Source of the DNA: Gracilinanus agilis
Taxonomy: Eukaryota
DNA length: 64,000 nucleotides
NCBI RefSeq assembly: GCF_016433145.1
Contig: NC_058133.1
Span: 484,435,659 to 484,499,658 of the forward strand
Direction: 5' to 3'
Shown here: piece by piece, positions 1,173-60,599 of the stretch
Position numbering within the stretch: position 1 is the first letter of the stretch
Layout of the letters: each line of letters starts with the position of its first letter
The notes under the pieces: model-generated
What the model saw: only the letters and a program-made list of their open reading frames with translations
Databases searched by the model: none
What the model was told of the DNA's origin: nothing
Position numbers and translations under genes: made by a program

Positions 1173-3088
1173 GTATGTCACTAAGAGCTTTGCTTCTGCC
1201 TCCCGGCATCCCTGCCCAGGGCGCTTCCTAGCTGGGACTCTCACTACTGGGGCTCACCGTCCCAGATGGCTCCTTCCAGTGGGTTGGATGTTCTGCCTGG
1301 AAATGGCAACGTCCCCACGACGAGGCGTGCGAGCTCGGGAGTGGGGCTCCCGAGGGCACTAACACCTTGATTCAAGGTGACAGAAAGGTGGCCTGGGACG
1401 AGTCTCCCCTCGGAGAGGCCACAGGTGAAGGAGCCAGAGAGCACGAAGGACGCCGAGACGCCTTCCCTTGGAGCCTCCTGCTTTCTCTGAGGCGAAGTCA
1501 AGGCCTCCTTTTGTCAGGCCAGCTTGTTTACTTGTGGGTGGTGGCCATCTGGCCAGAGACAATGAACAGTGGGGCCCATTATGCGCCCAGTGGGAATCAT
1601 GGTCACAATTTGGGGAGAGGGTGCAGCTCAGAGGCTCTAAAGTAGTCCCAAGGACACATTTCAGAGTCAAAACGCCTGGTGCGGAAGTGCACTCCAAACA
1701 GAAATGCCTGGCCGGGCCTTAAAGGTCTATCTTTTTACAGGTGACTCACTACTAAGTGCCTGAAAACAATTTTATGTGCACCAATCCTGTTAGCCAATTT
1801 CTAGCTCTTCTATAGGGCTAATTACAAAATGGTAACAAGCTTCTCCTAAAGACTCTGCCTTAACATCTCAACATGAAAAAAAAAAAACAGTCATAAAATT
1901 TAATGCCTAATCCATGCAGCAACCAACATATTAACCAGATGAATTCACAACCCCAAATGAATCTAACCTTTGGCACAGCCTAGAAGGCTTCCACCACACC
2001 CTTCGCCCCCAGTTGTCTTATTAAAACAGGAAATTCTGAAGGTCAGATGGGAGTTGGCACTCTCTCCCTCACTCTATCTTGTGTAGGACGCAATGCTATA
2101 ACCCGCTTAGTTTTTCTGAGCACAGCTCTATCTAAAATGCTTCAACCAATAACACACAACATGCATCTTCTTGAACAAGAGACATTTTTCATGGGAAATC
2201 TGTGCTGGGTTCTTGTTAGAAGCAATTTGATCTATTAATCTCAGAAGGTGGATCAAATGTGCTTGCCTCTAGCTTCTACACAAGATCTAAAAGGAAAACA
2301 TAAAGTCAGGGAACTGTTAAAAAAAAAAAAAGATAAAAACCAAACAGAGCCCTCAGTCATGCCCGTTAAACTTGTCTTTCTCCAAAGGAAACAAAATTCT
2401 TTCCTCTTAGATTCTGCTTAGACTCAGAAACACGCTGCCCATTTTAAGTGACTTGGGATGAGTCTCTGTACCACTGCAATTTTAGATCTATTAAAATGAC
2501 TAATTAAAATAAGAATTCTTGTTTTTTCAAATTAATTGCATTGTTTGTTCCTTCTATCCCAAGGCAAAAATGCCTCCTGGCCCCACTTCTCCTTTCACAA
2601 TAAAGACAGTCAGACATTTGCTTAGAGGGTGGGGAAGTTTCTACAAATGATCCTTAACCATAGCAAAAAAAAAAAAGGAATTAAAAAAAGTAAAAGCAGA
2701 AGCAAATGACTCAAAGCTGAAGTCTGGCTTGCTTGAAAGGAATAAGTGACCACAGGGCTCCCTTGTGCACAACATTTAGAAATGATTAATACATCTTTGT
2801 AATGCTTGCTTCCTCCCTCTCTCTACAGTTAGAAGCAGATCACAGAGATTTACATTTCCTCATCCAAGAGCACAAGAGTCAAGGGTGTATATAATTCAGT
2901 TAAGCTGGAGTTCATTCAACTAGGACAGGAAATCTTAAATGCAAGGGTGCTACAAAAACAAATATTTAAGTTCTACTTGACGCCGGAGCTGTCCATCATT
3001 TTGACCAAAAGCCCCTCAGTTCTAGTTTGTGATCACTTACTTATTTGTATTTCTACCTTGGCAGACTGATTACCAGGTGAGACTGGCC

Positions 3089-3778
3089 ATGGAGCCTCCG
3101 GGACTTTACCTGCATGCCGCTCTTCTGGCAACCACCATCTTTTCCTGGATTCCCCAAGTCAAAGCAAAGGACGAGCCCTTCTGGGCTATCAACAGTACTG
3201 CCTGGGACGGCGTGATTCAGAATAAAACAAATGGAAGCCTCCTAAACCCAGAGACTCCAGAACCAGTCACAGTCTATCCTCCCAACGTGGTGGAGACGAG
3301 GACGCCACGGGCCCCACCTCCCTCCCCATCCTTAGTGCCTCCAACTGGACACCATCTTGACACACCTCCTTCTCTGGACAGCAGCACTGGAGCCCTGCCG
3401 AGCACTGACCACCCGGGCAGGGGCCAGGATGACGTGCTGAAAAGGGACATTTGTGAAGAGGGCAACAACAAGATGGCCATGCTCGTCTGCCTGGTCATCA
3501 TCGCCGTCCTCTTCCTCATCTGTACTCTCCTCTTTCTGTCCACTGTGATCCTGGCAAACAGGGTGTCTTCCCTCAAGCGATCGAAGCAAGTGTACAAGCG
3601 GCAGACGAGAAGCAACGGGGATTTTCTGGCCACCAGCGGCCTGTGGCCTGCAGACTCTGACACGCTGAAAAGAGCAGAACAGCTCCAAGGGCCACGGCTG
3701 ATAATGCAGGCCACGGGGACCCTCACAGCTCAGAGGGAAAGGAAGGAGGATGGGGCAACCGAGAAACTCGCTCCCTGA
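3089..3778 (+). CDS. EVI2A: EVI2A, single-pass type I membrane glycoprotein, 229 aa, single coding exon
   Basis: Signal peptide; WDGVIQNKT; DICEEGNNKMAMLVCLVIIAVLFLICTLLFLSTVILANRVSSLKRSKQ TM/juxtamembrane segment and RSNGDFLA-SGLWPA tail match mammalian EVI2A. Acceptor ttctaccttggcag ends at 3064 and the ATG is at 3089. The ORF-track GTG start at 3029 is intronic. Confidence 0.97.
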   Translation: MEPPGLYLHAALLATTIFSWIPQVKAKDEPFWAINSTAWDGVIQNKTNGSLLNPETPEPVTVYPPNVVETRTPRAPPPSPSLVPPTGHHLDTPPSLDSSTGALPSTDHPGRGQDDVLKRDICEEGNNKMAMLVCLVIIAVLFLICTLLFLSTVILANRVSSLKRSKQVYKRQTRSNGDFLATSGLWPADSDTLKRAEQLQGPRLIMQATGTLTAQRERKEDGATEKLAP

Positions 3779-14677: not shown

Positions 14678-16120
14678 ATGGATCTCAAGCATTTCATCAT
14701 AATGTTCCTCTGTGGCTACTTGAAAATCCCAAATCTAGCAAAAACCCAGGCATACTCCACAGCCTCACCTCTGACTAGTCCTTTTAAATCATCAGTGTTG
14801 GATACAACAGCTAATTTTGGAAAAGGAATAGAGAAGCCTCTCAATCAACAACCCATCAACACTCCATCAGCACAACCACCACCATCACCGACCTCCAGCC
14901 CTCGTGGGCAACCACCACTGCCAACTGTTCTTGACACCTCTGGACAGCCACCATTGTCATTGATCCCTACGACTTCTGGTCAAACACCAGTGCCACCTGT
15001 CCTCAAGTCCACCATTCAACCAACGGCATCACCTGCCCACAATCCCACCAGGCAACCGCCAGGACCACCTGTCCCCAGCTTCTCTGGGCAACCACCAGCA
15101 TCACCCATCCCAAATTCCTTCAGTCAATCACCAAGACCACATGTTCACTACTCCCTCAGTCAATCACCAGAAACTCCTGTCTCTAATTCCACTAGACAAT
15201 CACCAGAATCATCAGTCCCTAATTCCACCAGACAACCATCAGTAGCACCAGTCCCTAGCTTCTCCAAGAAACCACCAGAATCCTCTGTCCCTAGCTCTAA
15301 TAAGCAATCGGCATCAATAGTTGTAACCCCAGGATTCATTGAAGAAGAGAATAATGATCCCATCAAAAAAAAACCTCCAAGCTCTTCTGCCAGTTCAATA
15401 GCTGGGGTGTTAATTGGCACAATTCTGACTTTTATGATAGTAGCTATAGTTGTGATTGTACTCTGGAAATGCTTCAGAAAACCAATCCTCCATGATCAAA
15501 ACTGGGCTGGCCGGTCTCCCTTTGCTGATGGAGAAACTCCTGATTTGTGTGTGGACTACAGCAGAGAAAACAGAAAATCCATAAAACGTTCATCAATTGT
15601 TTCACTTGAGATCTGGAAACCAAACAAAAGTATGCTCTTAGCAGATGATTTGGATGTCAAATTATTTGAATCGAGTGAAAATCTTGAGGAGTGTCCTAAG
15701 TCTGACACAGAGAAAATGAAAGACCCACCAAATGGCATATCAGAGGACAGTACTGACAGATCAACCATTGGCACCGCCATTTCTTCTTCAGAGGAGACAG
15801 AATTGAATCCAGCTCCAGCTCTTCCTGCTTTAGAAGAGCCAGGAAATCAGAATCCTGACTCATCTAACATGCCTCTAAGTGATTTCTCTCATCTACCACC
15901 TCCTGTGGACAGTCTCGATTCCGAGGTCAGGCCTCCTCTCCCTGACTCGTTTACACTGCCCCCACCTCCAGAAGACCTTCTCAACAGTCAGGAGGAATAC
16001 AGCACAAAATCCCCTAATTCAGTTTCATCAACATTAGAGACCCAGTTCCCTATTCCGCCTGACTCTAGCCAACAAGCGTTGGATGAATCGCTGCCACCAC
16101 CACCCACAGAATTATTGTGA
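14678..16120 (+). CDS. EVI2B: EVI2B (CD361), mucin-like type I membrane protein, 480 aa, single coding exon
   Basis: MDLKHFIIMFLCG signal; Pro/Ser/Thr-rich ectodomain; TM SIAGVLIGTILTFMIVAIVVIVLWKC; tail QNWAGRSPFADGETPD, LLADDLDVKLFESSEN and C-terminal ESLPPPPTELL match EVI2B. Acceptor ttgttttcttttacag ends at 14638. Confidence 0.98.
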   Translation: MDLKHFIIMFLCGYLKIPNLAKTQAYSTASPLTSPFKSSVLDTTANFGKGIEKPLNQQPINTPSAQPPPSPTSSPRGQPPLPTVLDTSGQPPLSLIPTTSGQTPVPPVLKSTIQPTASPAHNPTRQPPGPPVPSFSGQPPASPIPNSFSQSPRPHVHYSLSQSPETPVSNSTRQSPESSVPNSTRQPSVAPVPSFSKKPPESSVPSSNKQSASIVVTPGFIEEENNDPIKKKPPSSSASSIAGVLIGTILTFMIVAIVVIVLWKCFRKPILHDQNWAGRSPFADGETPDLCVDYSRENRKSIKRSSIVSLEIWKPNKSMLLADDLDVKLFESSENLEECPKSDTEKMKDPPNGISEDSTDRSTIGTAISSSEETELNPAPALPALEEPGNQNPDSSNMPLSDFSHLPPPVDSLDSEVRPPLPDSFTLPPPPEDLLNSQEEYSTKSPNSVSSTLETQFPIPPDSSQQALDESLPPPPTELL

Positions 16121-25389: not shown

Positions 25390-26724
25390 ATGGAATATCA
25401 GATATTGAAAATGTCTCCCTGCCTGCTTGTCCTCCTGCTTCTCATCCCCGGCGTTCTGTGTATCTGTCCTCACCAATGTACATGCTCCGAAAAGCACAGG
25501 CGTGTGGACTGTTCAGGCAGAAACTTGACTCTCTTGCCACCTGGGCTCCAAGAGAACATTGTCCACTTAAACCTGTCTTCTAACCTCTTTACTGATCTTC
25601 ACAACCAACTCACTCAATACACCAACCTGAGGACCCTCGATGTGTCGAACAACATGCTGGAGCGCCTCCCAGAGCAGCTGCCCAGGTCACTCTGGGAAAT
25701 GTATGCCACCAACAATGCCATCAAACTTCTTGACAAGTCGGATACTGCTTATCAATGGAACCTTCAGCGCCTTGATGTTTCTCAGAATATGCTAGAAAGG
25801 GTTGTTCTCATAAAAAATACCCTCAGCAGCCTCAAGTTTCTCAACCTTAGTAGTAACAAACTCTGGACAGTCCCAACTAACATGCCTTCCAACATACAGA
25901 CGGTGGACTTATCCAACAATTCTCTGACACAAATTCTCCCAGGGACATTAGTAAAGCTGATAAATCTCACCCATCTTTACCTACACAACAATAAGTTCAC
26001 GTACATTCCTGATCGAGCCTTTGACCAGCTATCTCAGCTGCGAGTAATAACTCTGTACAACAATCGATGGGCATGCGATGACAAACAAAATGTCACTTAT
26101 TTACTGAAATGGGTATTGGAGACAACAGCAGAGGTGATTGGGTCTCCATGTTCCAATACTACAATGCCCTGGCAGAATCACACGGAACAATCTACCCTTT
26201 CTGCAATTCCCTCCAGTATGTTCACTGTCAGTAGCACACAGGCCACGGATGCCATTAGCTCCTTGGGTCTAGAAACGCAACATAAGGTGACCAAAATACC
26301 CAAACAATATCGAACAAGGGAGTCCACATTAAGTGCCACACTGAGCAAAAGTGTAGTCCTTACAAGCACTGATAAGCCTTTGGTTCTCTACCCAGAAGAC
26401 CTGCCCACGGGAAAGACAAATTCCCACGAGGCAGCAGCTGCAACACTGACCATTCACATCCAAAACGCAACGGTCTTAAACACGAGCTTCAAGAGCTCAA
26501 CAAAATCCTCCACCACTCCCATGACCCTCAGCATCACTAGTGGTATGCCAAGCAGCTTTTCCGAAATAGCTCAGCAAAGCACAACTCTTACCTTAAGGAG
26601 AGAGGAGACAACCACCAATGCTTTTAATACTCGCTTACTTTCCACAGCAAGTATTTGGAAAGTCCATGTGTCGCATGTCTTAATGATCAATATCATTGTA
26701 ATAATGATCATGCTGATTGGCTGA
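25390..26724 (+). CDS. OMG: Oligodendrocyte myelin glycoprotein (OMgp), GPI-anchored LRR protein, 444 aa
   Basis: MEYQILKMS start; LRRNT CPHQCTCSEKHRRVDCSGRNL; LRRs (LDKSDTAYQWNL, LSSNKLWTVPTNMPS); LRRCT; Ser/Thr-rich stalk (KVTKIPKQYRT, SHEAAAATLTIH); hydrophobic C-terminus. Acceptor ttccag|gcaaagATG; the TTG start at 25360 is intronic. Confidence 0.99.
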   Translation: MEYQILKMSPCLLVLLLLIPGVLCICPHQCTCSEKHRRVDCSGRNLTLLPPGLQENIVHLNLSSNLFTDLHNQLTQYTNLRTLDVSNNMLERLPEQLPRSLWEMYATNNAIKLLDKSDTAYQWNLQRLDVSQNMLERVVLIKNTLSSLKFLNLSSNKLWTVPTNMPSNIQTVDLSNNSLTQILPGTLVKLINLTHLYLHNNKFTYIPDRAFDQLSQLRVITLYNNRWACDDKQNVTYLLKWVLETTAEVIGSPCSNTTMPWQNHTEQSTLSAIPSSMFTVSSTQATDAISSLGLETQHKVTKIPKQYRTRESTLSATLSKSVVLTSTDKPLVLYPEDLPTGKTNSHEAAAATLTIHIQNATVLNTSFKSSTKSSTTPMTLSITSGMPSSFSEIAQQSTTLTLRREETTTNAFNTRLLSTASIWKVHVSHVLMINIIVIMIMLIG

Positions 26725-45835: not shown

Positions 45836-47127
45836 AGAACAGCCCAACCTGAGGTCCTGCCTTCCTCTCCTGGTGTTTGAAGCTCACCAGTCGTGTGGCT
45901 GTGCTCAAGACTCTGACTGTCTTTGAGCCTCAGTTTCCTCATCTGTAACAATGTGTGCCATCTGCCTTACTAGATTACTGGCAAGAAATCTCTGAGGATC
46001 TTACATAGGCTATAAATGGGATACCCTCAAGAAATCCCGTTTTGTCAGAATGTTGATCTCTTCCAGGGCCACAAGAGGTGCTTCCTAAAATGGCTGATAA
46101 AAAAACAAACAAGTTTGCTGAACTGAACTGAACGAAGCGTGGAGCGCTCTGTGAGGTCCGTATTTTTTTTAAAAAGGTGACAAAGGACACAAAGGCCTAA
46201 GTCGGAGACATGAACGGACTTGTCCGTGGCTGCCCGTGCTTCAGCAATGCCGTTGTCCTACGTCAGCCCCAGCGCCGCCTCAAAAGCTGGCCGGTGTTGG
46301 GTCGTGCTCGGAGGCCCCTTCGCCCCGCTTCCTCCTTTCCTGTGCTTCCTGGAATCAGGGCTCCCTCTCTCTCCCCACCCCCAGTGCTGGCTCAACTACC
46401 ACGGCAAGACTTTCTTTGTAAATGAAAGGGAAAAAAACCAGAGAATTTAGCTCATGGTCCTCATGCCAAAAAGGCGAGGTGGGCTGCCATGTAAAATAAG
46501 GCACCAAGAGATTTCCTTAGGAAGGCATCGAGCTGTGTGTGGTGGCATCAGAGCTACGTGAGCAAGCCTGGAGGTGTTCCGCTCCTGAGCCATATCAAAG
46601 CCTGACACAAATACAGCAGAATGTTAATGTTAGTAAGAAACAGAAGCAATGTTTAGGGGTTTTCTCTTAAGCTAGTAAAACTATCAAACAGAATGTTCTC
46701 CTAGTCAGAGCCCACGCGAGTGGGGATAGAGAGCCGGGCCCGGAGTTGGCCAGTCCAAGGCTCCCCTCCGGCCTCAGCCTCTTCCTGGCTGGGTGACTCC
46801 GGCCAGGCCGCTTGGCCCAGACTGCCTAGTCCGTGCCACTCTTTTATCTTAGAACTGGCACTATGACGGAAGGCAAGGATTAAAAAAAAACATTGATATA
46901 AAGGCACATTCCTAAGGATGGTTGGGTAAATGGGGCTGCAGAAGAACAAAGGGACATTAATGGTATTCTTTTAATAAACTGGAAGCTCTTTGCAAGATTG
47001 CAAATTCATCTAAACTCCTTGAACTCTGGCTTCATTCCATCTGTTTATACCTGTTGCTCTGGAAAATGCTACATAAGAAAAAAGTAAACAGCACTCAGTC
47101 CAGAAGGCGGTCTCAGGTGTCACCGCC

Positions 47128-47239
47128 TATAAAATGGTATTTGAGCAGCTTTTGAAGGAATAAGAAGTCAGAGGTACCAGGGCAGGCACAAAAGACCTCT
47201 CGGGTTCTAATCTTCAAAAGAAAAATAAAGCCTCAACAG
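47128..47239 (+). promoter_or_regulatory. TATA box (47128-47134) and candidate ATG-free first exon of a novel embedded gene
   Basis: TATAAAA, about 80 nt of ATG-free exon, then CAG|GTAAAG donor at 47240; GTAAACA forkhead-like motif just upstream; CpG-rich block at 46.1-46.9 kb. Linkage to the 48278 ORF is inferred. Confidence 0.4.
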
Positions 47240-47689
47240 GTAAAGAAACTTTCTAAGTTGTTTAGTTCTAACTTTCAAAATGTTTTCTCCTAAGAAAATA
47301 GAGTTCTGCCTTTTAGAGAACACTGGGAACTAACTCCAATGCTGCTTGTTTGTTTTTAACTAAAGGCTCAGCAATAGTATTTTTTTAATATTTCATTTTT
47401 TCTTGTTACTCTGTCATTATTCTATTAAGGAATATTGGAATAAGAATGAAAAGAAACAACAAGTGGTGTGATCTCCAACAAGCCATTTAAATTCTCTAAA
47501 ATGGGTTTCACCATTACTTAAAAAAACATAGGAGGCTGCTATAAAAAAATGAATCTGCCTTGCTCTTTCTGTCAGCCAGACTGGGCTCTTCCTCTTCCTA
47601 CCTATAAACCTCTCCCCACCCCACTTGATCCTTCTCCACTCCTTAAGTTTATTTATTTATTTGCTTGTTTATTTATTCAGTGGTTTTTT

Positions 47690-47883
47690 TAAACCCTCAC
47701 CTTCTGTCTTGGAGGCAATACTGTGTACTGGTTCCAAGGCAGAAGAGTGGTAAGGGTGGGCAATGGGGGTCAAGTGACTTGCCCAGGGTCACACAGCTGG
47801 GAAGCGTCTGAGGCCAGATTTGAACCTAGGACCTCCCATCTCTAGGCCTGACTCTCAATCTACTGAGCTACCCAGCTGCCCCT
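47690..47883 (-). mobile_element. Full-length SINE
   Basis: Reverse-complement tail, CORE, B-box and head ending CTACCCAGCTGCCCC. Confidence 0.9.
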
Positions 47884-47996
47884 CCACTCCTTAAGTTAAA
47901 AAAAAAAAAAGTTTTGTTTTCTCCATAGAAAAGTTAAGGGGGAAATGAACATTAGCTAGATCACTAATTTAATACGCAAAGAAGAAGAGTCTAGGT

Positions 47997-48185
47997 CAGT
48001 GATGGGCAAACTTTTTTTAAAGGAGGGGGCCAAAGGAAAGGAAATGCTCATCTGTCAATCTGTTTCTAAGGCAAGTCTTTTCGAAGTTTCATTGTATTCT
48101 TCAGATTAGGAATAATGTCACACAGCAGGAAAGAATATTTCAAGGGGCCTCATCTGGCCCACAGGTCATTGTTTGCCCATCACTG
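47997..48185. mobile_element. hAT-type MITE, 189 bp
   Basis: Perfect 15-bp TIRs CAGTGATGGGCAAAC / GTTTGCCCATCACTG; degenerate 8-bp flanks GTCTAGGT / GTTGAGGG. Confidence 0.85.
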
Positions 48186-48277
48186 GTTGAGGGAATTAAG
48201 ATCTATGTTACTTCTTTGTCTGATGTTTTAAAATAAATGTTGGCAATCATTTGTATTATGTTGAAACAGAAAAGAAG

Positions 48278-48520
48278 ATGGGGTCTACATTGTGGTTCAT
48301 CAGCTTACTCCTTGCACTAGGAGGGGCTCCTCTATCCAGCAGAGATTCTACTGGGGGTGCTCTGGCTTATGGCAATAATACAAGCACCCTTCAGAAAAAT
48401 CCAGCTGCAAATCGAAATCTAACCCAGACCAACAGCAGTCCTGGCCTCAGAGAAATGGATGACCTGCCATTGCTTTTCTTCATGATGCCTTTCTTGCTGC
48501 TTTGTGGGTTAGTGAGATGA
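48278..48520 (+). CDS. Candidate novel 80-aa GPI-anchored small glycoprotein (CD24/CD52-like architecture)
   Basis: MGSTLWFISLLLALGGAPLSS signal-like N-terminus; sequons N33, N34, N47, N52; N52-S53-S54 omega-like triplet; C-terminal LPLLFFMMPFLLLCGLVR. Acceptor CAG at 48267-48269 with no other AG in 48201-48267; CTGAT branch-like motif at 48220; aagATGG Kozak; ATTAAA 48769 and AATAAA 48869. Confidence 0.62.
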   Translation: MGSTLWFISLLLALGGAPLSSRDSTGGALAYGNNTSTLQKNPAANRNLTQTNSSPGLREMDDLPLLFFMMPFLLLCGLVR

Positions 48521-49190
48521 ACTTTCTGAAGTTGGTCCATTCGCTGCCATCTACTACAACATGGAAAGCTCAGTGGGAAAGCAGCCTTCTGTACTGCATC
48601 TCAATTACTAAAGAATGACCACCATTAGGTTTTAATTTATGGTCTTTTAATATCTTGGTTATTTCTGGAAGTTCAATAACTTGATGGTTTGTAGGCACAA
48701 TGTTCACTCAATCAATGTTTGTTGAATGGATGGAGAAATCTTTTTTTTCCCTTTCCTCATGGCATTCAATTAAAAAGCAATCACAAACCAGATGTTGTTT
48801 CTCTTCAGGATTATAAAATGGAGTCCAATCTCCAATGGGCACAATAGAAACAAGGACAGAGAAAGCGGAATAAATTCTTGGTATTGCCATCTTCTGTTCA
48901 GAACACTTTTAATCAAGTACAGAGTGGGTGTGTGGGTGTATTTATACCTTAATTATGACAACCACAGGAAGAAAAAACTCCCCAGAATTCCCAAAGGAAG
49001 CTCACTGGTCTGGGCTACTATGGTACATGGGAGCAGGACTGGTATCTACAGTAATGCTTTCTGTCCTCGATAGCATGGCATATCCTATACACATTATCTC
49101 ATGTGACCATCATACAACAAGCCTGTGAGATGGGAACTTATAAATAGCCATCCTCATTTTGCAAATAGGAAAATGGTCTCAGGAAGTTTA

Positions 49191-49318
49191 TTTTAATAAT
49201 TTTATTTTTTTTAAATCCTTAACTTCTGTGTATTGGCTCATAGGCGGAAGGGTGGTAAGGGTGGGCAATGGGGGTCAAGTGACCTGCCCAGGGTCACACA
49301 GCTGGGAAGTGTCTGAGG
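49191..49318 (-). mobile_element. 5'-truncated young SINE with 16-bp TSD, inside a MIR-like element
   Basis: GGTCTCAGGAAGTTTA at 49175-49190 and 49319-49334. Confidence 0.9.
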
Positions 49319-54470: not shown

Positions 54471-54761
<291 letters not shown>

Positions 54762-56409: not shown

Positions 56410-57571
56410 GTATAGACTGAAACATAAGTTTGTTTGAATACAGACTGCTGGGAATCATCAAAACCCACCCTGTCTGACATGGTCACAGGGGGAACCTCGA
56501 GGAAGTACATGACAGCCTCAGGAAGGATGGAAACCCCTCACTCAGATACCCCTGTGTGACTCTTCTCTTACTAACACTCCTTATTATTGGAATCATTGTG
56601 ATCAATATCCCCACTCAGCCCCAGGGAGATACAGAAGAACATTATAGGCTATTATTAGAGCCCTTACAGGTCTCCTAAAAACTCCTAGGAAATTCCCACC
56701 TTTACAGAATTCCCCTAGAAGTCACTTCACAACAAACCAGCAAATAGTGAGTTAATGTTAAAAATTTAAAAATCCTAACTTAGGTCTCCCATACACAAGT
56801 GCCTGCAAAAACAGGCCAGAACAGTCTCCAAGTTTTTCCCCCCTCCCTGATCCCTGATTTGGTATAGTACATTAACATAAAAGAACAATGAATGATAAAT
56901 GGAGAAATTGTCTCCCATGAAAAGGCCTGTGCTTTCCCACCACTGTAGCCCAAGAGATATGTCAAACACACCTTGAAAAATATTGAAAGTTACTGGAGAA
57001 TGAAAAGTATGACTTAATACATTGTCTCTAAGAAAAGATGTATGATGAGAACGGATTTCAATGCCAACATTACATGTGATCTCAAAGTGTATAAGAAAGT
57101 ATATAAAAATAAACCTTACTCAAGGCAGAGCAGAGCAATATTCATGATGCCTGCCTGGCTGAAACACTGACTGTCTTTCATTTGTCTTAATCATCTACGT
57201 TGTCCCACCTCCTCAAGACCCTGGACCTGTGGGAGTTATAGTCCAGCAACTGACAATGTAGGAATTTGTTTTGTTTCACTGACAAGATCTGTTGCAACTT
57301 TTTTTCCTCTTCCAATATTGGGGTGGGAGGGAGAGAAAATTTGAAAAATTTTTAAATAACAAAAACCAAAGAAATCACATATCCTCCAAAGAATCAAATT
57401 AAAATAATCACACAAGATAGAACTGGTATCCTTAAAATGGGTGTTAGAAGAATGTAAAGAACAAGGAAGTTTTTTCAAAAAAAGGAGGCATGTCTAGGAA
57501 ATGGATACTCGGTTTTGTGGTACAAAGAAAAGAAAGCTATTTGACATCATAACTCTATGGTTCTCCCTTAC

Positions 57572-57718
57572 CTCGTCATAAATTCCTCAAATTTAGAACT
57601 GGTAAGATTCAGGCTGGACCAGTGAGTGTCAGCTACAGGCTTGTGTTCTGGAGGACCCAGGTAGGCAAGGAGAGTTGCCATCTTATCAAAAGGTCGTCTT
57701 CCAACAGCTTTGTGATCT
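57572..57718 (-). CDS. NF1: NF1 exon, legacy 27a (147 bp): DHKAVGRRPFDKMATLLAYLGPPEHKPVADTHWSSLNLTSSKFEEFMT
   Basis: Translation matches human as I recall it; canonical AG/GT; phase 2 on both sides. Confidence 0.97.
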
Positions 57719-59796
57719 CTAGAAAGAAGAAGTGACTTATCAAGGAGCTCGTGACCTTCCAGTACAAGTTCCCTAAATAATCAGTTGGACACTTGGGTTT
57801 AGCGATTGCTGGTATTCAATGCCCATGAACAAATAGCATGGGGGGAAAAGACATTTAAATGGTCACTAGTCTACAGTGACATCTTGAATCTCTTATGCAG
57901 AGTTGCAAAAAACTCTAAGCACTTAGAATAATGAAAAAACATTTTGTGTGTGATATAAAGTTTAGATCAATAAGAATACACGGTTCATGCCATCATGGAT
58001 TTTAAAATTAAGAGAATGACACACATTAAAAAATATATTAATTTAGGTTATGCAGCCATTTGGAGCTTGTGTTATGTGAATTAAAGATGCTAGTTCAAAC
58101 TTAGTTTTTCTCATATTGCTTTCTAGTGTCCCCAGGAATTTCAATCCTAGCTGCCTTGGGATCTCTCAAAATACTATACTGTTACTCTGGATTACTTCTG
58201 GGATAATTTGCCTAATATGATCCAATGATTTTTTAAAAACTATTACTAAAAAGATTTGATGACTATTGTTTTTGAGTCCAGTCAAATCTAGGAATGAGAA
58301 GCTGTATCTAGCATTTCCCCTGAGATTCATGATCTTTTGCTCCCCTGGAGCAGGAAGTTCATCCCTCTTTCTGTTGGCAGCAAACTGAGGAAGTCTACAG
58401 ACCCTTCTCAGAATAATGCTTCTAACTGAAGAAAGTAAGGAAATCAATGGTATTAAGTTTCAAAAACACTAAAACACATCCCCAGAACCAGAAGAATTCT
58501 GTTATAAGTTTAGTTCTAGAAAATAATCTTCAGTAATTTTATTGGTGTTACAGTGAATAAGTAAATTAAATTATTAGTATCACTGTTTTTATTATCTTTA
58601 CAAATAATGGATAAATGACAGAAGAGTTATTATTTGAGTTCTGAGAAGGAAAGGGTTAACACAGATTAGGAGTTTAGGGATGGTTTTGTGGAGAAGATGG
58701 TACCGAGTCAGGCTTCAAAGCATTATACATCAAATGGAATTGCTGCATTAGCATTCTATTATAAGGCGGCACATGCTAACAGATTTCTATCCTGATCTGC
58801 ACCTAGTTCTCTGGCTATTTTACAAAGTGCAAGTAGGTTTTCTTATTCCTAATCCACTGGTCAACCCACCTCAGGAGCCTATTTCAGAGCTGGTAACCCA
58901 CTTTAATAGTTTTGTTATGTCATGGCATTTTTTCCTGGGTACTGACAAACTCCCTCATATTATTTTAGTCATTTTCTATTCATAAGACAAAATGTTGCTC
59001 CTTAAGGAGCTGATAAATATATGGAAAATTAAGAACAAAGTAATGCATTTAGCCAGCTCTTGAGAATGCCATTAGAAAGTCTAAAGAAAGATGAGAGAAA
59101 AACAAAAAAACTATGAATATGATGGAAATGAAATGTAAGCCAGCACCTTAATTCACATACCACAAAGATGATAGGATGATGTGCTTCTTCTAAATCTGAA
59201 CTCTTAGCACTATTTTAAGCTTTGAAAATCTCAACAATAAGAATGACTCACATGAACATAATGCCTTAAGCTTTGCAAAGAACTTATTTCATTTGATCTT
59301 CATGACAAGCCTGGGAGGTAAATGCTATTATTCCCATTTATCAGAAGGGGAAACTGAGGCTGGGATAAAGGATGTGACTAGGCCAGGGTCACATAGCTAG
59401 CAAATATCTGAGGCCAGTAAAAAGTCCCCGCTTCCTGATTCCACGTGAAACAAGTGACCTGCCACACTAAGATGTCTCCTTAGAGAAGGGAGCTGCTTCC
59501 CAAGTTAAAACAAGCCTGAGACTCCCTGGGACTGAAAATTTATACACTCATTGAGGAAAAGAGAACATGTGGCAAGGATTGGGAGTTTTCTAGCCTAAAA
59601 CAAAATCTGATCACAATAAGCAAGGTCAGGCAGCTGAGTAACAGGGAGACCAAAGCAGTGGCTGCAAGCCACAGCCTCACTTTCTACACTAAGATAGAGA
59701 AGGTCCTTGGGATACCACTCAACATAGCTGTTGTGGGAAGAGAAGAAGGTCCATGTCAGACACAGGGCAGTTTTGGCATACTTCTGGGTGCCTTTC

Positions 59797-60115: not shown

Positions 60116-60262
60116 CTGTTGCTTGAAAGATATTGGCCAATTTTCTCTTGGTTGTTCCAGAGGAGACGGTGAAGAGCAAGGACATTGCCATCACTGATGA
60201 AGGAAAGGCTGTGGTTTATGGCATCACTTACAGGGCAATCAGATGCAATATCAAGGAAAAAT
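60116..60262 (-). CDS. NF1: NF1 exon, legacy 26 (147 bp): FFLDIASDCPVSDAINHSLSFISDGNVLALHRLLWNNQEKIGQYLSSN
   Basis: Near-identical to human; ttttggtag acceptor and GTATAG donor. Confidence 0.97.
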
Positions 60263-60599
60263 CTACCAAAATACAAATGTCATTACAATTTTTGAAATCT
60301 TACACTAAACATTTGCATTAAATTTGCATACTCTATCCACACATTATCAGAAAGCTGTAGTATTACACCATACATCCTTTGGGGGACCCACAAAGGGAGA
60401 GGGGAAGAGGAAAAGGGAGAGAAACAGACACAAAGCTATAGTCCCAATTCTTTATTATTGGGTTCTCAGTTTCACAAATATGCCTTTTAATATCAAATGG
60501 TCAGAATAAGCTGAGGAGACATTTGAGTGTTCATCATAAGATTTTATCACAAGGTAAAGTAAGCTCTAGAGCTTTCAGTTTTTAAAAAAGCCTGCTCAG

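Follow-up and report, generated by a model that had tools for sequence, protein, structure and literature searches.

Introduction

For over 30 years, intron 27b of NF1, in which the three genes EVI2A, EVI2B and OMG are embedded, has served as a textbook example of gene nesting. One of the three products, OMG, is anchored to the membrane by glycosylphosphatidylinositol (GPI). CD24 and CD52 form a class of small GPI-anchored glycopeptides which signals via its glycans, these being ligands of Siglecs and selectins. The human CD24 gene is located at 6q21, not at 17q11.2, and its signal peptide is split between exons, while for CD52 the signal sequences are known to be better conserved than the mature peptide. 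Here, we describe a candidate fourth gene of NF1 intron 27b that encodes a predicted peptide of CD24/CD52-like architecture. It was detected in a stretch of 64,000 nucleotides (nt) of the agile gracile opossum, Gracilinanus agilis (contig NC_058133.1, positions 484,435,659 to 484,499,658 of the forward strand; assembly GCA_016433145.1 = AgileGrace, PMC11438212). This whole stretch is referred to as the window, and positions are counted from its first letter. A literature search retrieved no report of a fourth gene in NF1 intron 27b and no work on that intron in marsupials.

Human CD24 is made as a precursor of 80 amino acids (aa) which gives rise to a mature peptide of 31 aa (PMC9604962). The candidate precursor also comprises 80 aa, within the range of about 76-80 aa for the CD24 family, and has a similar predicted layout, namely a signal peptide, a mucin-like core of approximately 30 residues with sites for N- and O-glycans, and a GPI signal not followed by a cytoplasmic tail. 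By contrast, it did not match the CD24 profile (PF14984) at E <= 1, it lies between OMG and NF1 exon 27b and not at the locus of CD24, and its whole open reading frame (ORF) is contained in exon 2. CD52 is characterized as a tiny GPI-anchored glycopeptide with its function in its glycans and with a mature peptide of 12 residues that carries one N-glycan (PMC6719568). The design of a small GPI-anchored glycopeptide is also predicted for the candidate, but its mature peptide would be longer (~31-37 residues) and would contain two to four N-X-S/T sequons. Moreover, sequence similarity to CD52 was found neither by the Pfam search nor by the database searches, and the two loci are different. Judged by these comparisons, the candidate is related in sequence neither to CD24 nor to CD52. 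An initial annotation of the window, made from the letters alone, had claimed a likeness to these two proteins in architecture but not in sequence, and this distinction holds, as no Pfam family was matched at E <= 1.

With EVI2A, EVI2B and OMG the candidate has in common the intron, the strand, the order along the strand and, presumably, the organization into a non-coding exon and a single coding exon. Its predicted product would be a surface glycoprotein as theirs are. It differs from them by the lack of any sequence relationship, by its size (80 aa versus 230-480) and by its absence from every protein collection searched; to date, didelphid opossums are the only group in which it has been seen. 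Plant arabinogalactan peptides (PF06376 and others) are likewise composed of a signal peptide, a glycosylated core that is very short, and a GPI signal. These belong to another kingdom and have a hydroxyproline O-glycan chemistry, the likeness being one of convergent architecture only.

As spliced RNA from a relative attests, a real gene is present at the locus, which is spliced and has a TATA promoter of its own. The best explanation for the data as a whole is that this gene encodes a new, fast-evolving CD24-like GPI-anchored glycopeptide and is the fourth gene in intron 27b of didelphids. We estimate the probability of this reading at roughly 0.7.

A spliced gene within NF1 intron 27b

The candidate gene extends from 47.1 to 48.8 kilobases (kb) on the plus strand. 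OMG lies 21 kb upstream of it, and 5.7 kb separate it from NF1 exon 27b, which bounds the intron on the candidate's side (Table 1). NF1 exon 28 is located outside the window. Because EVI2A, EVI2B and OMG lie on the plus strand on one side of the candidate and NF1 exon 27b lies on the minus strand on the other, the candidate is situated within intron 27b and is antisense to NF1. The position in this intron, as claimed by the initial annotation, was thus borne out.

Re-reading of the sequence agreed with the ORF at 48278-48520 and the 80-aa peptide proposed earlier, and each of the gene signals that had been reported with them was found again: TATAAAA, the ATG-free exon 1, the donor, the acceptor, the AG-free zone, CTGAT, the Kozak context, ATTAAA and AATAAA. 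No ATG occurs in the interval between the TATA box and the donor, which reads CAG/GTAAAG at 47239/47240. The acceptor (...GAAACAG/AAAAGAAGATGG at 48269/48270, with the AG itself at 48268-48269) is preceded by an AG-free zone of 67 nt and by a CTGAT branch-like motif at 48220. The start ATG follows 8 nt into exon 2 and has A at -3 and G at +4. As the stop codon is located in the last exon, nonsense-mediated decay is not expected. Cleavage takes place at a CA around 48784-48786, and a T/GT-rich stretch lies downstream at 48792-48806. Copies of AATAAA are found at 48869, at 48232 inside the intron and at 47224 inside exon 1. The last of these had been flagged as a caveat for the gene model; it is correctly described, but a spliced transcript is still formed in a relative.

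Contigs from four runs were mapped on 47915-49150, the RNA runs X21 and X15 from organism B and X1 from organism A, and the run X24 from the window's own species. Judging by the number and dates of its studies, organism B is probably Monodelphis domestica. A contig of 527 nt from X21 covers 48265-48728 and possesses 69 additional upstream letters that are not colinear with that stretch. The last 30 of these letters match 47205-47234 at 29 of 30 positions, which is the sole such place in the window. Exon 1 is known only from this loose end of a single X21 contig, of which 30 of the 69 letters were compared. Exon 1 and the intron both end in AACAG, so that 5 nt are common to both sides of the junction. 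From these shared ends and the X21 match it follows that the junction is exactly 47239/48270. Counted back by 74 nt, the 5' end of the X21 contig is at ~47166, 32-38 nt after the TATA box. The contigs of X15 and X1 are colinear with the window over 48200-48784 and 48190-48786, respectively, and stop 10-12 nt after ATTAAA (48769). Since all contigs are colinear across the ORF and the 3' untranslated region (UTR), the 80-codon ORF is not spliced further. The spliced plus-strand gene that the initial annotation had predicted from signals is therefore met by RNA at the junction, at the 5' end behind the TATA box and at the 3' ends behind ATTAAA.

It might be argued that there is no separate gene at all, and that the contigs stem from NF1 pre-mRNA, DNA carry-over or read-through from OMG, with an ORF that arose by chance. 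Ahead of the acceptor, two of the three relatives' contigs indeed follow the genomic sequence without a break, and the contigs, taken from Logan, carry no strand or tissue information. Yet the interval removed from the X21 RNA is bounded by GT..AG on the plus strand only; the exact loss of these 1030 nt would read CT..AC on the strand of NF1, and the X21 RNA is therefore not NF1 pre-mRNA. A genomic DNA source is excluded unless a retrocopy is assumed, which itself needs a spliced mRNA. Furthermore, the 5' end of the X21 contig lies behind the TATA box and not in OMG, and one poly(A) site marks the 3' end of contigs from both organisms. The assumption that there is no separate gene is largely refuted by the spliced X21 contig, and we consider it very improbable. 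An isoform that retains the intron or starts internally coexists with the spliced form, since the X15 and X1 contigs include the end of the intron and yet finish at the poly(A) site.

An identical share, 0.12, of the sampled exon 2 words occurs in each of 22 RNA runs. These come from over 10 studies and include libraries as small as 28-53 million letters. As a sign of expression this share is suggestive only, because it does not tell which words are present. The X21 run also yielded a contig of low depth (2.9) at 48891-49029, past the ATTAAA site and the AATAAA at 48869, which may represent read-through or NF1 pre-mRNA. The stretch 48797-48880 is covered by no contig.

A role of the locus as host gene for a small nucleolar RNA (snoRNA) or microRNA (miRNA) was also considered. 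The idea was dropped because no Rfam family was present in the exons or the intron of the candidate; within 46800-49200, none came to or near its gathering score.

Table 1. Features of the candidate gene and its surroundings in the window
Feature	Position	Strand	Basis and remarks
TATA box TATAAAA, candidate's own promoter	47128..47134	+	read directly
Exon 1, non-coding, ATG-free	47160..47239	+	start approximate; observed contig reaches ~47166
Intron, 1030 nt, GT..AG	47240..48269	+	junction in RNA contig X21; holds MIR-like short interspersed element (SINE) and miniature inverted-repeat transposable element (MITE)
MITE, 197 nt, in candidate's intron	47993..48189	.	perfect 15-nt terminal inverted repeats at 47997-48011 and 48171-48185
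Exon 2, terminal, whole coding sequence and 3' UTR	48270..48785	+	colinear RNA contigs
Coding sequence, 80 codons and stop	48278..48520	+	first ATG of spliced mRNA, AAGATGG context
Predicted signal peptide, residues 1-21, hydrophobic core LWFISLLLAL	48278..48340	+	Kyte-Doolittle 9-residue maximum 2.57
Polar S/T/N-rich core, putative mature glycopeptide, sequons N33, N34, N47	48341..48430	+	hydropathy -1.0
N52-S53-S54, candidate GPI omega/omega+1/omega+2	48431..48439	+	read directly; omega assigned by rule
C-terminal hydrophobic tail L63-R80, no cytoplasmic tail	48464..48517	+	Kyte-Doolittle 15-residue maximum 2.65
Poly(A) signal ATTAAA	48769..48774	+	3' ends of contigs X15 (organism B) and X1 (organism A) at 48784 and 48786
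EVI2A coding exon	3029..3778	+	ORF as listed, true ATG inside; Pfam PF05399, E 2.7e-99
EVI2B coding exon	14678..16120	+	EVI2B cluster in Atlas, score 0.97, 216 shared features; PF27913 in source annotation
OMG coding exon	~25390..26724	+	LRRNT and LRR Pfam domains; annotated 444-aa LRR protein beside EVI2B inside NF1
NF1 exon 27b (legacy numbering)	54471..54584	-	neurofibromin residues 1554-1591; PDB chains 7r03, 3p7z; E 1e-18 to 1e-19
NF1 exon 27a	~57570-57720	-	neurofibromin motif match
NF1 exon 26	~60130-60300	-	neurofibromin motif match

Architecture of the predicted peptide

The peptide possesses every element ascribed to it by the initial annotation, that is, a hydrophobic N-terminal stretch, a polar core, four N-X-S/T sequons (N33, N34, N47 and N52), an N-S-S triplet and a hydrophobic end without a tail. 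By the -3/-1 rule only, the signal peptide is likely to be cleaved after G15 or S21; small residues occupy -3 and -1 of G15, and the hydrophobic core comprises 10 residues. The putative GPI attachment signal is composed of N52-S-S, the 8-residue spacer PGLREMDD (P55-D62) and a hydrophobic run of 17 residues up to V79, followed by R80. It has small residues at omega to omega+2, a spacer within the range of 5-10 residues, a hydrophobic end within the range of 15-20 residues and no cytoplasmic tail. A hydrophobic C-terminus devoid of a cytoplasmic tail and preceded by a polar spacer and a small triplet is the standard GPI signal. The part of the chain between the two hydrophobic ends is expected to be disordered.

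It is conceivable that the ORF is translated but that its product does not receive a GPI anchor. The peptide would then be secreted, or it would be a micro-membrane protein held by a single pass of its C-terminal hydrophobic stretch. The charged R80 at the end of the chain, after the hydrophobic run, and the two prolines within this run (P64 and P72) would fit such a product, and the attachment of GPI was judged by rules. On the other hand, the tail-less hydrophobic C-terminus together with the polar spacer of 8 residues and the small triplet corresponds to the standard signal, the layout is common to OMG and CD24, and the neighbours of the peptide in the Atlas are GPI-anchored families. A product lacking the anchor is therefore regarded as improbable.

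The frequency of such an architecture was determined with a strict definition that called for hydrophobic N- and C-termini and, between them, a polar core, a small triplet and a spacer, the thresholds having been chosen after the ORF was seen. Among the 103 ATG-initiated ORFs of 50-150 aa in the window only the candidate conformed to this definition, and among ~22,000 ORFs from 200 simulated 64-kb sequences none did. With a loose definition, 62 of 16,705 simulated ORFs (0.4%) were recovered. Architecture and position together are a stronger argument for coding than the comparative data described below.

Comparison with the ORF of a relative

The ORF of the relative was rebuilt by applying the listed X21 differences to the window, which comprised 33 of 34 substitutions and all seven gap positions. 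The resulting ORF is intact and has 78 codons, a deletion of 6 nt keeping the frame. Residues 1-8, 22-30 and 49-80 are identical in both ORFs except for a G56D polymorphism. The triplet N52-S53-S54 is unchanged, and the protein sequence of the hydrophobic tail is identical, both base changes in this region being synonymous. The core has changed considerably: YGNNTSTL is replaced by D-TTTTS and AANRNLT by AMNQSQT. It is still rich in S, T and N, and the sequon N47-L-T is replaced by N45-Q-S, a shift of two residues.

The ratio of nonsynonymous to synonymous substitution rates (dN/dS, Nei-Gojobori) was 0.48 for the whole ORF, 0.51 for the signal peptide, 0.70 for the core and 0.12 for the C-terminal signal (residues 56-80). 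The core differs at 13.5% of its bases compared to 5.3% in the flanking intron and UTR, a 2.5-fold difference (p = 0.011). Such a difference speaks for diversifying selection or a local cluster of mutations rather than for simple neutrality. A core evolving faster than its flanks is also typical of CD24 and CD52.

According to the initial annotation, frameshifts, stops and a dN/dS near 1 in related marsupials would speak against the gene. In the relative, the ORF is kept open without frameshifts or stops; the expected constraint is less evident, as the dN/dS of 0.48 is not distinguishable from 1.

Homology searches and coding potential

A number of observations weigh against a gene for a GPI-anchored glycopeptide. 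The first group concerns homology. A Pfam-A hmmscan of the 80-aa peptide gave no family at E <= 1, the CD24 profile included, and among 5.8 billion proteins searched by indexed words there was no match at E <= 10. An exhaustive phmmer search of 1.84 billion representatives produced no CD24-like match and no usable homologue. A comparison by a protein language model speaks for the proposed peptide: plant arabinogalactan peptides were nearest to the candidate and the CD24 cluster was second-nearest (0.90, 168 shared features), all of them consisting of a signal, a short glycosylated core and a GPI signal. On the negative side, the Atlas recognition value was low, and 168 shared features are just under the mark of 170. 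Because of this low value, the language-model neighbourhood is only a lead.

The second group concerns the RNA, which originates from two related organisms (A and B, ~7% diverged from the window) and not from the window's own species. The spliced form was recovered in only one of the three runs of the relatives (X21). In the X15 and X1 contigs, splicing has not taken place at the acceptor, and at least the last 70-270 nt of the intron are retained; this unspliced form contains four upstream ATGs and reaches a word depth of 38 in X1. Moreover, the polypyrimidine tract of the acceptor is weak, with 48% pyrimidines.

The third group concerns the peptide and its conservation. Signal peptide and GPI signal were assigned by sequence rules only. 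As one X21 substitution is unlisted, the rebuilt ORF of the relative is not fully certain. The dN/dS of the whole ORF, based on 20 changes in one species pair, is not significantly below 1 (p ~0.1), and when the same substitutions were placed at random, the ORF stayed open 41% of the time. Owing to this non-significant ratio and the 41% retention under neutrality, the comparative support from one species pair is modest.

These findings have to be set against the possibility that the locus produces a spliced, polyadenylated long non-coding RNA, whose ORF is untranslated and resembles a signal-plus-GPI protein by coincidence. Such an RNA would be compatible with the dN/dS values and with the survival of the ORF, which is only mildly unlikely under neutrality (0.41, multiplied by about one third for an in-frame indel). 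It would also agree with the stronger divergence of the ORF region compared to the UTR and intron flanks, with the missing protein homologues and with the absence of the peptide from every protein collection searched. On the other side, the architecture is very rare in random ORFs under both definitions, and the start codon of the ORF is the first AUG of the mRNA and has a strong context. Amino-acid changes avoid the region of the GPI signal, in which the two fixed base changes are silent, and the core, although heavily changed, has kept a sequon and its S/T/N composition. In addition, exons and intron are free of Rfam snoRNA and miRNA families, so that a host-gene reason for the transcript is missing. 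Taken together, a non-coding RNA appears unlikely, and the gene for a GPI-anchored glycopeptide is preferred.

The only match obtained by phmmer (E 7.5e-4) was a tandem-repeat protein of 622 aa that aligned in eight stretches and was rejected as a composition artefact. The 80-aa product is contained in none of the protein collections searched, in which EVI2B, OMG and NF1 of the same genome are present as called genes. The initial annotation had proposed an unannotated or lineage-restricted gene. The absence from all these collections supports the former; as to the latter, the gene has so far been seen only in didelphid opossums.

Proposed expression and function

In the proposed mechanism, transcription would begin near 47160 from the gene's own TATA promoter, the GT-AG intron of 1030 nt would be removed, and the resulting mRNA of ~600 nt would be polyadenylated ~10 nt after the ATTAAA at 48769, as is seen in related species. 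Translation would start at the first AUG, which has a strong context, and proceed through the 80-codon ORF. The signal peptide, cleaved after G15 or S21, would send the chain into the endoplasmic reticulum, and GPI transamidase would exchange the C-terminal signal for a GPI anchor at N52. The mature product would be a peptide of ~31-37 residues, rich in S, T and N, N- and O-glycosylated and displayed at the cell surface on the outer side of the membrane. Like CD24 and CD52, it may act as a small mucin-like glycan carrier whose function resides in the glycans rather than in the peptide. Such a function would explain why the core changes in sequence but not in composition. The fast-changing core further suggests a role in immune or reproductive recognition.

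A wider interpretation is more tentative, and we rate its chances at slightly less than even. It assumes that opossums, perhaps all marsupials, possess a fourth intron 27b gene that represents a new family of CD24-like mini-mucins, with a core under diversifying selection and targeting signals that are held, and that the gene may have arisen de novo from intronic sequence. A de novo birth is possible because no homologue was detected among 15 billion proteins.

A fourth gene of the same design in marsupials changes the textbook picture of this intron and raises the question of whether genes for leukocyte and neural surface glycoproteins are preferentially born or retained in intron 27b. If the product is a GPI-anchored mini-mucin, it would be the third, sequence-unrelated example of the CD24/CD52 class. 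It would also be a fast-evolving, lineage-restricted member of this class and a candidate for marsupial immune or reproductive recognition. The locus illustrates that standard annotation overlooks short ORFs of the secretory pathway, even where a genome is annotated and assembled to chromosome level.

Mobile elements and neighbouring genes

The intron of the candidate harbors a MITE whose terminal inverted repeats read CAGTGATGGGCAAAC and GTTTGCCCATCACTG and which ends 80 nt before the acceptor. The X1 contig of organism A skips 47993-48189, so the MITE is missing at that site. In X24, a run of 100 million letters from the window's species, words of the MITE reached depths of up to 28,000. Because of its absence in organism A and these word depths, the element looks young and very high-copy in Gracilinanus. 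Two copies of a MIR-like marsupial SINE, one at ~47690-47895 in the candidate's intron and one at 49200-49260, share the core GGTCAAGTGACTTGCCCAGGGTCACACAGCTGGGAAG.

The NF1 exons were located by probing short neurofibromin motifs against the six-frame translation of the window. Compared to the human structure sequences, exon 27b shows two replacements: KTLNIFY has N in place of S, and YVTRR has T in place of A. For EVI2A, EVI2B and OMG (3029-26724), the whole coding sequence of each gene is contained in one exon of the plus strand.

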